A DNA stretch of 63,150 bases, counting the filler, from Choristocarpus tenellus KU-1152 (Eukaryota > Protista > Phaeophyceae), in assembly GCA_964200185.2 (NCBI GenBank). It is 12 parts of 12 records of this genome, joined end to end, with 100 filler letters (N's around TTAATTAATTAA, not from the genome) between each part and the next. Parts side by side here need not be neighbours in the genome. Positions count along the whole stretch, not along the records: positions 56,921 to 63,150 come from CAXNAD020008626.1; 11 more parts are not named here. The stretch is one strand, 5' to 3'. This document shows positions 56,921 through 63,150 of the stretch, in pieces; the stretch's first letter is position 1, and each line of letters starts with the position of its first letter. The notes under the pieces are model-generated. The model saw only the letters and a program-made list of their open reading frames with translations. It was not told the DNA's origin and ran no database searches. The position numbers were made by a program, and so were the translations under genes.

Positions 56921-56985
<65 letters not shown>

Positions 56986-57768
56986 ACCTCTGTGGTGCGT
57001 TGTTGAAGTTTGGTCAAGTTAGTTAGTGATTGCTTTAATTGTGTGTGTGACGCTTCCTCTTGAAGCTACTGCAGTATTGAGTATTGAGTAGTAGGTCTTC
57101 CATAGGATGGTTTGAGAGGTGGATTTGAATAGCCTATTATCGGCAGTTGGTATTGTCGGGGGACAATTGGACAATTGCTATTTGCTGTTGTGTCGGGCGA
57201 TTTTTTTTTGCCTGGTTCTGAAGTGATGACTAAGTAGTGGTTGCTACTATTGTTGGTTTTTGATGCGGTCATGAAATGCTATCGTTGGAGAGTGTTGTCG
57301 AGTGAGGGGGACAGCTTGCCGGTTTTTACCCTCGGGGGTGCTTCCATGGGTTGTGGGAATAAAGGTGCAGGTTGAGTTTTTCGTGAGCTAAGAATCATGG
57401 TTGGATCGCGATTTTGATTGAATAGGGGGAGACTCTTCTTGAGGGAAATTTTTTGAAGGGTGTCTTCTGGTGCAAGAGATAGATAAGCCCCTGGAGCCAG
57501 CTTTGTTACACTACAGGGTTCCTTTGCGCTGCTTTCCCATACAAGAATGCATTTGAAGACACGAGACTGCTCTCAAACACACACACACACACACGCGCGC
57601 GCGCGCACGGCAGGGCTGTCAGTCATCTACACCTGTATGAATTGCCAAACAGGGTCTCTCGGGGTGAGACGGTCGTTGCTTCCTTTTTTTATTTAATGTA
57701 CATACATACATACATACATACATACATTTTTTTTTCTTTCTTTCATTGCTGTGTGTTTTGCGATCCAG

Positions 57769-59076
57769 CAGGAAGGTGTTTGCGTTTGACAAGGACCTAA
57801 GGCGCCACGCTCTCCTGCACAGGAGGGTGGAAGAGGGCGGGGGGAAGGGGGTTGTCAAGGTGTGCCTGCAAGACTTTCTCGAGACCAACGTCAGTGACCC
57901 TCGGTACGCAGAGGTACGATCGATTCTGTTGGATCCATCTTGCTCTGGATCTGGCATAGTTACGTCCCCCGAGAGGATTCATGATCAAGACACTACCGTG
58001 GCTGTGGAAGGTGGGGAGGGGGGGGGCGTGTGCAAGAAAGGGGAAAGCAATGAAGCACAAGACCGCTTGAAGCGGCTGGCGATATTCCAGCTCTCAGCTC
58101 TGAAGAAAGCAATGTCTTTCCCTCAGGTGATCAGTTGGTTCTTTTTGGTGCCATGGGGCCCTCGGGGTAGAGAAATAGATGGAAGTTTGGGGGGGGGGGG
58201 GGGGGGGGGGATTGACTCCTCCTCCTCCTCCTTCTCCTCCTCATGTTCTTTTTTTACGTGACTCTTAACTGAGATGTTGTGGAAGGGATGGGTTTGAGGG
58301 GCCAAAAGTCTAGGTGGTCTGGTTTTGTGTGTCCTCAGGTCAGGGCATGCGTTCTTTCGAGCGCGCTAAAGCCCTTCCTTGTCTCTTCGCGGAGGGTGGT
58401 CCTCTCTCTCTCTCTCTCTCTTGTGTGTGTTTACTGGGGGTTGAATCAGTGTCATCAACGCGAATGTTGTGTGTGTGTGGATGTTATGTTCTTTCTGTGA
58501 TACCATACCCTTGAGTACACAATACCAAGGCCTGTTTGTCTGAGTTACACCATATACTTGACTACACGATATCAAGCCTTGTTTTGTCTAAGTAGTACCA
58601 CATGCTTGAGTACAAATCATCACGCCTTGTTCGTCTGAGTTCAGAGTGCACACACCCTGACCGGAACAGAGTCCCCTTTTATTTTGTGTCCCTTCGCCTC
58701 CCTGCGCACCCTAACATTCACCTCTTTTTTTTTTCTTTTTTTTCAAGGTGCAACGTGTGTGCTATTCCACCTGCTCTCTTCACCGAACAGAGAATGAGGC
58801 AGTAGTCATGGATGCACTCAGTCAGCAGCCTGAGTTCACAGGTGAAGGAGGTGATCCGTCGGTGAGGCCATTCCGGTTAGTTCCATGCTTGCCTAAGTGG
58901 CACAGGCGCGGTGTTTCTGGGAATGGGGTGAGTGATGACCAGGCACAGTGTATGGTTAGAGCAGACCCTTTCGAGGACCAGACGAATGGGTTCTTTGTTG
59001 CACTCTTGTCAAGGAGTGGGAGTGGTGACCCGTTACCCCCTGCGTTGGCTGGTAAGAAATGTATGCAAGAGAAGAG

Positions 59077-59108
<32 letters not shown>

Positions 59109-59209
59109 AGAAAGAGAAGGGAGATGCTGGTACTAAGAGGAGAAAGACGGAGGTGGGGGGTGAGGTGGGTGTATGCGTGGAAGCAGAAGGCGAGTCCCAT
59201 ATGAGATGA
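57769..59209 (+). CDS. NSUN5: 25S/28S rRNA cytosine-C5 methyltransferase NSUN5/Rcm1, last two exons (~57769-58126, 58748-59209)
   Basis: KVFAFDKD..R, QDFL...DPRYAEVRSILLDPSCSGSG (motif IV), LAIFQLSALKKAMSFPQ|VQRVCYSTCSLHRTENEAVV (motif VI), LPKWHRRG, TNGFFVAL, Lys-rich tail; canonical phase-0 GT-AG intron. Confidence 0.93.
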
Positions 59210-60188
59210 TTTATTTTCGTTTGTGTGTATAGGGCGGCATGTCTGAAATAGAGATTTAGTTAGTCGGGATTTGTTTAGAGGATTTGTTGATGGAGGGCGT
59301 GCCGTCCATCCTGTTCTGTTTTCTTAGTTCAAGTTGGAATTGCAGTGGTGTTGACAAGCACTTGTAGGTAATAGTTTTGTTGTAGTTTTTGTTCTTCACA
59401 TCTTGAATGGTTTTCTGGGAGGGGGGGGGGGGGGGGGGGGGGGTGTCCTTTCTTTTTTTTTTTTTTGTATCCCACGAATGGGTGGGGTTTTTTTTTTTNN
59501 NNNNNNNGGGGGGAGTTGCCTCTGCTATCTCTGTGTTGTGAATCCCAACGATTCGATGGAGTTTTTTTTTTGGTTGGATAATAATAATAATATCGAGATC
59601 GTGTTACAAACCTCTTGATTCATTGATCATTTTACCGTGCATACGCATGCTTTGTAACAACCTCTTGAATCGATGAATTCCCAATTCTTAGCTGATGAAT
59701 AAAGTACTCATGAATGCTCTAAAACCACGACACTATTTATTGCTTCCACGATTGGAGTTCTGTTCTTTATCTTTGATGTGATTGGATGTACTGAAGTGCT
59801 GTTGTTTCATTTGAAGTGGAACACAATACAATTTCTCGGTGCTTCTTGTTTCTTTTGGCCATCCATCACTACTTGGCAAAACGCCCCAGAGTTTTTTTTT
59901 TTTATCATCTGCTGCATGCAGTCCCAGACACTCAGTGTAAAGATGCTGCCCTGTTCACACAGAGGCATATGTTACATTGTTTAGATGTTGCATAGATGGG
60001 CTATTGGGGGATGGACTGGGAGCAGGTCTTCACTTGAAGCCTCAAGTTAGGTGTCTCCTAGATGAGGACTCTAACAGCTTGCGTTGATTTGTAATAAGAT
60101 TAATGTAAATCTGTGTTTCGTGTAACTGTCAAAATCAGGGTCTTGTTCGAGTAAAGTATGAACAGCAATTGAATTAATTGTCGGTTGG

Positions 60189-62279
60189 TGTTAAGAATGT
60201 GCCTTTTTTATTTGTGCGTAAAAGAAGATTCTGTTAAAAAAAAAAATCAGTTGTTGTACTATGGTTCGACAACTGGATAATTTATAGGAATAATTCTGTT
60301 GAGTAATCTTGAGAATAATTATTTGGGTTATTATGGTACAACAAGAAGAATCCTAGGAAGGGAAGGTTGTATCAAGTGACACAGAATGAGTGATGTTTTA
60401 TTAGAATACAAATGCTATGGTGACAAGGATCCCCCCCTTTGAGCTTTGAGGTTCACTCCTTCCTTTTGTCTTCCTTGCTTCATGTACAACCTGTTCTGCA
60501 CAATAGGGAATTAATTGAGTCATTTACATACACAAGCCTTGGGAACATAAATTGCTTTAACATGCTAGCTAGCATTACTTATTGAATTGTGCTAAGTTCT
60601 CAAGGCTAGCGTTAAATCGAATTTGAGGGGGAGTCCCGATGGAGGAGGCCGTCGGTTACAGAAGACGTACTTCGAGAAGAGCAGGAAGGAGTATGGAGAC
60701 ACGACACCTGCAACACCAGTTGAAGAAGGTGGAGATGAAGACAGAGAGGCGGTTAGCAGAACCGCGCAACAGGAGACACCAACTGGACGGAGATTTCGAC
60801 GACTTTAATACCGCCGCCGTCAAAATCCAAGGTTAAAGTGGCAATGATGATGGTGAAGGATTCGCAATGTTTAGCAAAATTTCCTTGGTGTGTTGTCATG
60901 GATACTTTAAACCTTGGATTTTGACGGCGGCGGTATTAAAGTCGTCGCAATTTCCGTCCAGTTGGTGTCTCCTGTTGCGCGGTTCTGCTAACCGCCTCTC
61001 TGTCTTCATCTCCACCTTCTTCAACTGGTGTTGCAGGTGTCGTGTCTCCATATTCCGCTCATACTGTCATTTACGCTCTGGTGATTCACCAGGTTCAGCT
61101 GGGGGGTTACTGTTGGGATCCACCTGTCGCTGTATGGTCATCATCTGGTCTACTTGTAGGTGGGAAAGATAGACTCCTCTCACCAGAACCTAAGACCATG
61201 CTAGCAAAGACGGTTTTCGACAGAGGCAGGTGGATGGCAAAGGGAGAGGGCAGAGGTCCAAGGAGGAACTTGGACTACTGGAAGTGAAACTTTGCTGGAA
61301 CAAGGAAACTGGAACAGTTGTGGAGGACCAGAGTTTGCAGTTAGAGATGTGGCATTTTGTGTGGAGAATCCAAGTTGGTCTGATTGGTCTGATGCAAGGA
61401 GAGTGGTTGGGTACCTGTTGGGGGTACTAAAGAGCATGGAATTACCTTTGGTGATTTCGGATTTTATGGGAATGGACCAAGGGGTCAGTTTTTTTGGCTA
61501 TACAGATGCTGAGTATGCTAACAATAAAGACAGTAGATTGTCTATTTCAGGTGGTGTTGCGATGTTTGGGGGAGGATGTGTTGGCTGGTGGTTTGGGAAG
61601 CAGAAAATGGTTACACTGTCTATTGCTGAGACTGAGTATGTTGCATTGTGTGAGTTTAAGAAGGAGGTTATGTTCCTCGGGCAAGTGCACATGTTCATGC
61701 AACCACGTTGGGAAGGAAAGATAGCAATTGCATATTTGTCAACGGAGTTCCAACATGCTGGTCTTGTTACTAAGGGTTTGTCTAAGGAATCTTTCAATAG
61801 GCATTCCAGTGTTATCATGCGTCGAATGAAGTGGAATTGATTTCTGGATCAAGTCATGTCCAAGAATGTTTAAGGTGTTATTTTTCACTTGAAGTTCAAA
61901 GCAGGGGAGGGAGTTAAGAAGATTACTTTTATTCATGTGTAAAGAAGATTCTGTTCAATAAATAATCTGTTGGACTATGGTTCAACAACTGGATAATTGA
62001 TAGGAATGTTTCTGTTGAGTAACCATGAGAATAATTATCCGGGTTATTATGGTATAAACAAGAAGAATCCTAGAAAGGGAAGGTTGTATCAAGTGACACA
62101 GAATGAGTGACGTGTTGTAAGAATATGAATGGTAAGGTGATGAGGACCGCCCCCTTTGAGCTCTGATGTTCACTCCTTCCTTTCTCCTTCCTTACTCCAT
62201 GTACAACCTATTATGTACAATAAGGAATTCATCAAGTCATTTACATACACAAGTCTTGGGAACATGAATTTCTGTAACA
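60189..62279 (+). mobile_element. Complete non-autonomous Copia derivative: 5' LTR 60189-60562, 3' LTR 61912-62279, TSD GTTGG, RNase H remnant, no protease/integrase/RT core
   Basis: TG...CA ends with the 5-bp TSD GTTGG on both sides, two homologous ~370-bp LTRs, a purine tract before the 3' LTR, and YTDAEYA..KDSRLSISG...ETEYVAL. Confidence 0.9.
60688..61056 (+). ncRNA. Candidate hairpin RNA (siRNA/miRNA precursor): arms 60688-60839 and 60904-61056
   Basis: The inverted repeat itself is certain (3 substitutions and 1 indel over ~152 bp); expression as a small-RNA precursor is inferred. Confidence 0.45.
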
Positions 62280-62467
62280 GTTGGGGAAGGGTATTGGTAC
62301 ATTCAATTAGCACAAGATAAAATAATACTATTTCTATGTCCAGCTGGTACAAATTTAATAGTGGTTTGGGTTGTGCCTTGATAGTCTTTTGTTGTTCGCT
62401 TCTCCAGTATCCACTCACATTGCCCAACGGGTTTAAATAAGCGCCAACCAATTCCCAGTTAGGGTTT

Positions 62468-62725
62468 GAGTGAAAGTATCTTAGAGGGTACGAGTTTTGC
62501 CCTGTTTGTCCATTTGGGGCTTGGCTTTCCATGGAGTTTTTTTATGGCATTTTCCTACCCCAACATGTTTCGGAGTAGGTAAATATGTACGTTATGAAAA
62601 GGTGTGTCCAGAACATGGATGTTGATACTTCCTAACCAACACGATGCCAAAATTGCATCAAAATCTCAACGTTGGATTTGGGCTCCCAAATGGATGCGGC
62701 TCTACCCTCTAAGATACTTTGACTT
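62468..62725 (+). mobile_element. MITE family A
   Basis: TIRs; flanks GTTT/GCTT. Confidence 0.85.
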
Positions 62726-63150
62726 GCTTGTTGCATAACTCGACTGTCTGTATTAGCACTACCTTCTTAGTGCCAGTGCTCTTTCTTTATCATTTCTTGT
62801 TGTAAATCTTTTATCTCCAAGTACAACTGAGGGTCATGGAGTTAGTTGCACTTTGGGTTTGGATGGAGTAGTTTTGATCATGCCCTCTTCGAGCTTTTCA
62901 ATGCTCCTCCCTCTTTCAATAAAGCAAACCTTCTCTGTAACCTCAACATAACATGGGTTTTTTTACTCAATTTATAGTTTCAAGTCAAACGGGCATATAT
63001 TTGGAACACACACACAACACATACATATAGGAGACATCTTCAGTGCAGCTTTTCCCATTTCTTTCTGTTTTGTCTTTCAAGGGAGGTAACACCCCTCCCC
63101 CCCCCCCCACTCACTACTATCACAAATTAGTGAAGTAGATGCAAAAAATG

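Follow-up and report, generated by a model that had tools for sequence, protein, structure and literature searches.

Transposon sequences duplicated in inverted orientation are known to give rise to silencing triggers and new small-RNA genes, in plants as well as in animals. Mu killer, a rearranged transposon derivative of maize, acts in this way on its own family (PMC3440606), and palindromes of the maize Sirevirus LTRs are targeted by siRNAs (PMC4728375). Concerning the origin of such structures, template switching creates perfect hairpins in a single step, inverts spacers and homogenises arms (PMC8794818, PMC10710096, PMC8604942, PMC13100816). Transposons are densely covered by small RNAs in brown algae, those of Ectocarpus being densest on transposable elements (PMC4513859), and no source hairpin of such kind has been described. 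Comparable structures in brown algae are the long foldbacks of the miRNA loci of Ectocarpus and Saccharina (PMC4513859, PMC5381526).

The locus described here lies on a 6230-nt contig of the early-diverging brown alga Choristocarpus tenellus (CAXNAD020008626.1, assembly GCA_964200185.2), which carries a hairpin-bearing Copia remnant. All positions refer to the window, the whole stretch of 63,150 nucleotides that was analysed. It is fairly probable that this remnant represents an old and dead member of a non-autonomous Copia lineage, and that its hairpin is a by-product of template switching, most likely formed after insertion. Its features are collected in Table 1.

Table 1. Features of contig CAXNAD020008626.1, in window coordinates
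Feature	Position	Strand	Remarks
63-G start of the contig	56921-56983		
NSUN5/Rcm1-like rRNA cytosine-C5 methyltransferase, C-terminal exons	57746-59209	+	PF01189
Internal G runs	58188-58210 and 59425-59443		~20 each
N gap	59499-59507		9 N
Left target-site duplication	60184-60188		GTTGG; identical 5-mer at 62280-62284
5' LTR	60189-60562	+	374 nt, TG...CA ends
Leader	60563-60687	+	125 nt, 7 CpGs, o/e 1.1
Left arm, native orientation	60688-60837	+	
Spacer	60838-60906		57-69 nt by choice of arm ends, partly self-pairing
Right arm, inverted copy of the left arm	60907-61056	-	
Integrase-RT linker coding piece, flipped in place	61058-61132	-	~75 nt
RT N-terminal remnant	61133-61333	+	~126 nt missing after 61200; aligned to L004 2011-2300
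RNase H remnant	61334-61840	+	begins at the RT-core deletion joint 61333/61334
Polypurine tract	61898-61912	+	AAAGCAGGGGAGGGA, abuts the 3' LTR
3' LTR	61913-62279	+	367 nt, TG...CA ends
Right target-site duplication	62280-62284		GTTGG

The preliminary description of this DNA had recognised a Copia derivative of 2.1 kb flanked by a target-site duplication, and GTTGG is indeed found on both sides. Direct LTRs, their TG...CA ends and a 5-bp target-site duplication are the features of Ty1/Copia elements. The sequence directly after the 5' LTR, at the candidate primer-binding-site position, begins TGCTAGCTAGCA. The region is covered by three public runs of C. tenellus (X1, X2 and X3), which belong to one study, are available as contigs and are none of them recorded as RNA. 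The junction between the unique upstream flank and the 5' LTR is present, with 1 mismatch, in contigs of X1 and X2. The two LTRs align with 311/367 identical bases (84.7%, K2P 0.172), and this divergence looks real rather than the product of an assembly mosaic, because both LTRs hold private changes with respect to the family majority in the contigs of the three runs.

Upstream of the remnant, on the same strand, the NSUN5/Rcm1-like gene ends at a distance of about 1 kb. Its ORF 58748-59209 shares 99% identity with a partial C. tenellus protein, and the identity of its product to a Discosporangium protein is 45%. Downstream, a MITE-like unit occupies 62467-62724, with 22-nt terminal inverted repeats (62469-62490 and 62703-62724) and further copies at L004 349-582 (85%) and L006 7603-7831 (71%), two other contigs of the comparison. 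Its summed contig depth, which cannot be used as a copy number, lies between 3e5 and 2e6 in X1-X3, the single-copy flank reaching 6-21, and the unit is probably among the most abundant repeats of the C. tenellus genome.

Pfam gave no match in the three ORFs of the element, nor did the RNase H ORF find one in a word-index protein search. An exhaustive HMMER search with the ORF 61292-61840 returned 7734 proteins; the long matches align just after their own RVT_2 domain and also carry Retrotran_gag_2, rve and Pol_BBD, and the alignment of Copia polyproteins to the element starts exactly at 61334. The pol remnant belongs with Copia-type polyproteins by domain order as well, the integrase of the related contig L004 lying upstream of its reverse transcriptase (RT). 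The best match of the exhaustive search (E = 1.5e-103), located outside the window, is P0001, a predicted protein of 2851 aa with ten RNase-H-like stretches, which may be a gene prediction running across arrayed Copia remnants.

Within 60563-61333, neither Pfam nor polyprotein alignment detected any similarity to gag, protease, integrase or the RT core, and the only part related to a polyprotein is the RT N-terminal remnant, recognised through L004. The arm had been placed at the gag position; this placement was not borne out, the arm showing no gag similarity in these two comparisons. Judged from its sequence, the element is a deletion derivative devoid of autonomy, in which gag, protease, integrase and RT are not intact. 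Other copies of the family run past 61334 and 61710, as loose contig ends, with sequence absent from this element, and on this comparison the breaks at both positions are internal deletions. The sequence missing at 61334 encodes ...ATIMTRPDV, which we take to be a typical stretch of Copia RT. Compared with its relatives, the element also lacks about 126 nt of the RT N-terminus (61200/61205), and the deletion at ~61710 took away about 125-146 nt of the C-terminal part of RNase H, so that the RNase H ORF is not intact.

The family itself is very abundant. Its summed depth in the contigs of X1-X3 is in the thousands, compared with 6-21 for the single-copy flank, contig depth in these runs being unusable as copy number. 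Family contigs covering leader and arm are 80-90% identical to the element. The homologous targets of the arm that had been postulated elsewhere in the genome were thus found, in many contigs of this family, the matches to leader and left arm being about 85-88% identical. In contigs of other copies, the LTR end is followed by the leader and then by the left arm (60517-60735, ~85% identity), which places the left arm in its native position. Leader, arm and spacer sequence was not found in L001, L002 and L004-L007, from the same genome, nor in L008-L010, from other sources, and a copy in which the arm continues natively was not recovered from these contigs.

The inverted duplication of the leader had been announced some 125 bp after the 5' LTR, with few differences between arms and a partly self-complementary loop, and each of these points was recovered. 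The hairpin starts 125 nt after the LTR. The repeat finder returned two arms of 150 nt, 97% complementary without gaps and 69 nt apart; the gapped core spans 148 nt (60692-60839 against 60904-61052) with 2 substitutions (60792 G/A and 60796 T/G) and a single 1-nt bulge, the arms being 98.6% identical. The spacer pairs partly with itself, as proposed. Beyond the arm ends, a comparison of the leader with the right flank in both orientations gave no similarity above shuffled controls, so that the arm boundaries are sharp. The foldback measures about 360 nt overall and is nearly perfectly paired. The strong fold that had been predicted was obtained: the + strand RNA folds at -328.8 kcal/mol (z = -33.6; shuffles -120 ± 6) and the - strand RNA at -316.3 kcal/mol. 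The + transcript folds slightly better because 60792 and the arm-edge position 60691 become G:U pairs, in agreement with the two G:U-compatible differences noted before.

A structure of this kind on a short contig of a repeat-rich draft calls for a comparison with assembly error, in which the fold-back would have been made by the assembler or by chimeric reads. The contig is only 6.2 kb long and the family highly repeated; the G runs and the 9-N gap look like sequencing or scaffolding artefacts. With its 63-G start, internal G runs and gap, the assembly quality of this contig is modest and fine detail has to be read with caution. No contig among those listed spans the whole hairpin, and X1 is without a contig over the spacer. 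The two arms can nevertheless be told apart (2 substitutions and 2 indels), and the hairpin lies within the contig, flanked by unique sequence on either side. The depth of contigs over the spacer, zero in X1, is close to single-copy in X2 and X3; all three runs may be the assembly's own data and hence provide no independent proof against misassembly. Moreover, the joint between the right arm and the next segment recurs in an independently built contig. An artefact is on these grounds improbable.

The age of the arms can be compared with that of the element. The LTRs had been judged by eye to be far more diverged than the arms, and counting bears this out, at 17% versus 1.4%. Substitutions amount to 2/148 between arms and 56/367 between LTRs (Fisher p = 3.7e-7), and the corresponding Jukes-Cantor distances are 0.014 and 0.171, a ratio of 0.08 or about 12-fold less. 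The data support arms that are far younger than the element, or that have been homogenised. Both options had been put forward, together with a third, maintenance by selection, to which nothing points; the likeness of the arms can be explained without it. Further information comes from the changes private to the left copy, namely the T at 60796 and a 5-nt insertion at 60683-60687, which are absent from the right arm and from most family contigs. A right arm in the family state facing a left copy with private changes fits a true duplication followed by few mutations.

The hairpin is not the only rearranged piece of this region. Four further C. tenellus contigs were located through weak protein relatives, and in one of these, L004, the RT N-terminus is preserved together with the integrase and the linker between integrase and RT. 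This contig and the element have their RT-core deletion joint in common, with 85% identity across 61205-61706. The loss of RT consequently predates this copy, which belongs to a non-autonomous lineage. The linker piece 61058-~61132 matches L004 1952-1999 on the opposite strand, and the linker of L004 is in frame (...PEPGEPSERTLRYARRLAGLLVDGKDKPLPPEPK...), directly followed by the sequence that matches 61133 onwards. From this opposite orientation, a piece of about 75 nt was flipped in place and abuts the right arm. The earlier description of an inverted copy of the element's own leader holds, although the duplication is not as clean as it seemed, since this second flipped piece adjoins the right arm. 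Contig joints on opposite strands at 61057/61058 and 61145/61146 are in keeping with this; the joints 61057/61146 and 61058/61145 may be both ends of the inversion, or one joint shifted by one base, and it is L004 that settles the orientation of the linker piece, not the contig joints. An imperfect microhomology, GTATG.GCGGA, with an overlap of 8-10 nt, lies where the right arm meets the flipped linker. Between the left arm and the RT remnant there are thus a spacer, an inverted copy of the arm and a flipped linker, and gag, protease and integrase are gone.

Inverted copies templated nearby, with the ancestral order still visible in L004 and in family contigs, are the pattern produced by template switching. 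The order of events was reconstructed from this single relative and from contig fragments. In the mechanism proposed, serial template switching by a polymerase would have left a deletion filled with short inverted local pieces, and this multi-step rearrangement would have replaced gag, protease and integrase. The flipped linker beside the right arm indicates that the hairpin formed as part of a disorderly rearrangement, and it may well be a mutational by-product of accidental origin. A DNA-level event, most likely long after insertion, is favoured because divergence between the arms is about 12 times lower than between the LTRs; homogenisation from arm to arm may add to their likeness.

The same architecture could have been laid down before or at integration. 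Reverse transcriptases often switch templates, and strand switches of this enzyme would have given arms as old as the LTRs, kept alike afterwards by gene conversion within the palindrome or by template-switch homogenisation. A contig of 538 nt from X1 is relevant in this respect. It covers 61035-61574 with 95% identity, includes the joint of right arm and flipped linker, and hints at more than one copy, with a depth about 8 times single-copy, on a scale that does not count copies. If this contig represents a genuine second copy rather than a mosaic pieced together across repeats, then the rearrangement is older and the likeness of the arms is due to homogenisation. Homogenisation of inverted-repeat arms is documented (PMC8604942, PMC13100816). 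Conversion would however have to wipe out a divergence of about 15% and yet spare a 5-nt indel and two substitutions. Contigs cover the spacer at no more than about single-copy depth, and a 150-bp hairpin in the RNA template would be expected to impede further retrotransposition. An origin before integration is thus rather unlikely, and the post-insertion template switch is kept as the preferred reading.

The base composition of the duplicated region is peculiar. Each arm contains 10 CpGs, all at matching positions (o/e ~1.0), and the rest of the element has an o/e of 0.18-0.41. Leader and hairpin taken together reach 1.12, which ranks them in the top four of 820 windows, the genome median being 0.46 (400-nt windows, seven C. 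tenellus contigs). It had been reported that the left arm keeps about 10 CpGs beside an RNase H region nearly free of them. The first count is exact, and the RNase H part, with 7 CpGs in 440 nt, is poor in CpG without being free of it. In the LTRs, none of the four dinucleotide positions that are CpG in either copy is CpG in both. The unduplicated leader is as CpG-rich as the arms, so that CpG richness is no property of the hairpin as such and conversion between arms does not by itself explain the island. A second CpG-rich island (o/e 1.0-1.2) was observed at L001 1650-2350, downstream of the 3' LTR of another copy. DNMT1 is reported in the related Discosporangium and not in other brown algae (10.1101/2024.02.19.579948), and Schizocladia, a sister lineage, has about 80% 5mCG with unmethylated promoter islands (PMC13076208). 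A CpG-rich island over leader and arm, in a genome with a median of 0.46, bears on whether Discosporangiales still methylate their DNA.

The possible activity of the hairpin can be considered separately from its origin. According to the fold, a transcript through the region would form a near-perfect dsRNA of about 150 bp. Transcription could start in the 5' LTR, or read through from the methyltransferase gene on the same strand. If the region is transcribed, Dicer would cut this dsRNA into siRNAs matching the leader of an abundant family. The small-RNA machinery is plausibly present, given the density of small RNAs on the transposable elements of Ectocarpus. The locus also displays the structural traits of a Mu killer-type trigger, a long near-perfect inverted repeat of a transposon and homologous copies elsewhere.

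On this basis, the preliminary description proposed a candidate 'Copia-killer': the hairpin would be transcribed and diced, its siRNAs would silence the Copia family in trans, and selection would keep the arms alike. The precedent of Mu killer (PMC3440606) speaks for it, as do the near-perfect 150-bp stem, slightly better on the + transcript, the abundance of the homologous family, and the position of the hairpin, 125 nt past the LTR and downstream of a same-strand gene. The island-like composition of leader and arms also goes in this direction, such islands marking unmethylated active promoters in Schizocladia (PMC13076208). The family copies that could be aligned, on the other hand, are only about 85-88% identical to the arm, and only about 3% of 21-mers would then be perfect matches (0.85^21, arithmetic). 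With a divergence of about 15% from its partner, the 5' LTR may have a dead promoter, the adjoining inverted scrap points to an accidental origin, and the likeness of the arms is explicable without selection. A selected silencer of this kind appears doubtful, with a low probability. In a related reading, a template-switch accident in a dead Copia would have made a transcribed, unmethylated hairpin, CpG-island-like in composition, whose siRNAs police the abundant family; this combination is rather improbable and should be regarded as speculative.

The locus could also be read as a young, transposon-born miRNA precursor. Both the model of miRNA birth by inverted duplication and the long foldbacks of brown algae lend some plausibility to this idea (PMC4513859, PMC5381526). 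The foldback is nevertheless atypical: its ~360 nt with 98.6% pairing are about twice the brown-algal means of 170-183 nt, which are those of imperfect stems, and an almost fully paired structure predicts heterogeneous siRNAs, not one duplex. The miRNAs described in brown algae show no sign of a transposon origin (PMC4513859, PMC5381526), and a search of Rfam with 59510-63150 (E <= 1) gave no match. A miRNA precursor is for these reasons very improbable; if active at all, the hairpin modelled here would be a hairpin-siRNA locus and not a miRNA gene.

The significance of the locus depends on its expression. A silent locus would be an ordinary remnant of a rearranged transposon. If expressed, it would have no described precedent in brown algae as a hairpin small-RNA locus of transposon origin, and would provide a concrete, datable example of the birth of a trigger by template switching, in a lineage with independent multicellularity. 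What is new beyond the preliminary description is the highly repeated nature of the family, the RT-core deletion shared with L004, and the second flipped piece beside the right arm.

Comparison with the known systems places this hairpin between several of them. Like Mu killer (PMC3440606), it belongs to a rearranged non-autonomous transposon derivative in which sequence from the 5' part of the family is duplicated in inverted orientation, and a flanking gene on the same strand could supply read-through transcription. Mu killer, however, derives from a DNA transposon, MuDR, by partial inverted duplication, has a hairpin of about 4 kb and comes with genetic proof of silencing, whereas the C. tenellus hairpin sits in an LTR retrotransposon, has 150-bp arms and targets of about 85-88% identity, and is known from sequence alone. 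The palindromes of maize Sireviruses (PMC4728375) are likewise of Copia type, lie near an LTR and form a possible focus of small RNAs; these are short, conserved family features inside the LTR, in contrast to a long hairpin of the internal region, found so far in this copy only, with one contig hinting at a second. The miRNA loci of Ectocarpus and Saccharina (PMC4513859, PMC5381526) share with it a long brown-algal foldback, but their stems are imperfect and 170-183 nt long on average, mostly inside genes and without transposon similarity, while the present one is near-perfect, ~360 nt long, intergenic and transposon-derived. The hairpins and new miRNA genes that arise by template switching (PMC8794818, PMC10710096, PMC8604942) resemble it in the one-step inverted copy of nearby sequence, in the adjoining segment flipped in place and in arms that are near-perfect from birth. 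The events described there mostly involve tens of bases, and the pieces in C. tenellus measure 150 nt and about 75 nt and accompany a multi-kilobase deletion inside a transposon, which brings this case closer to a replicative complex rearrangement.
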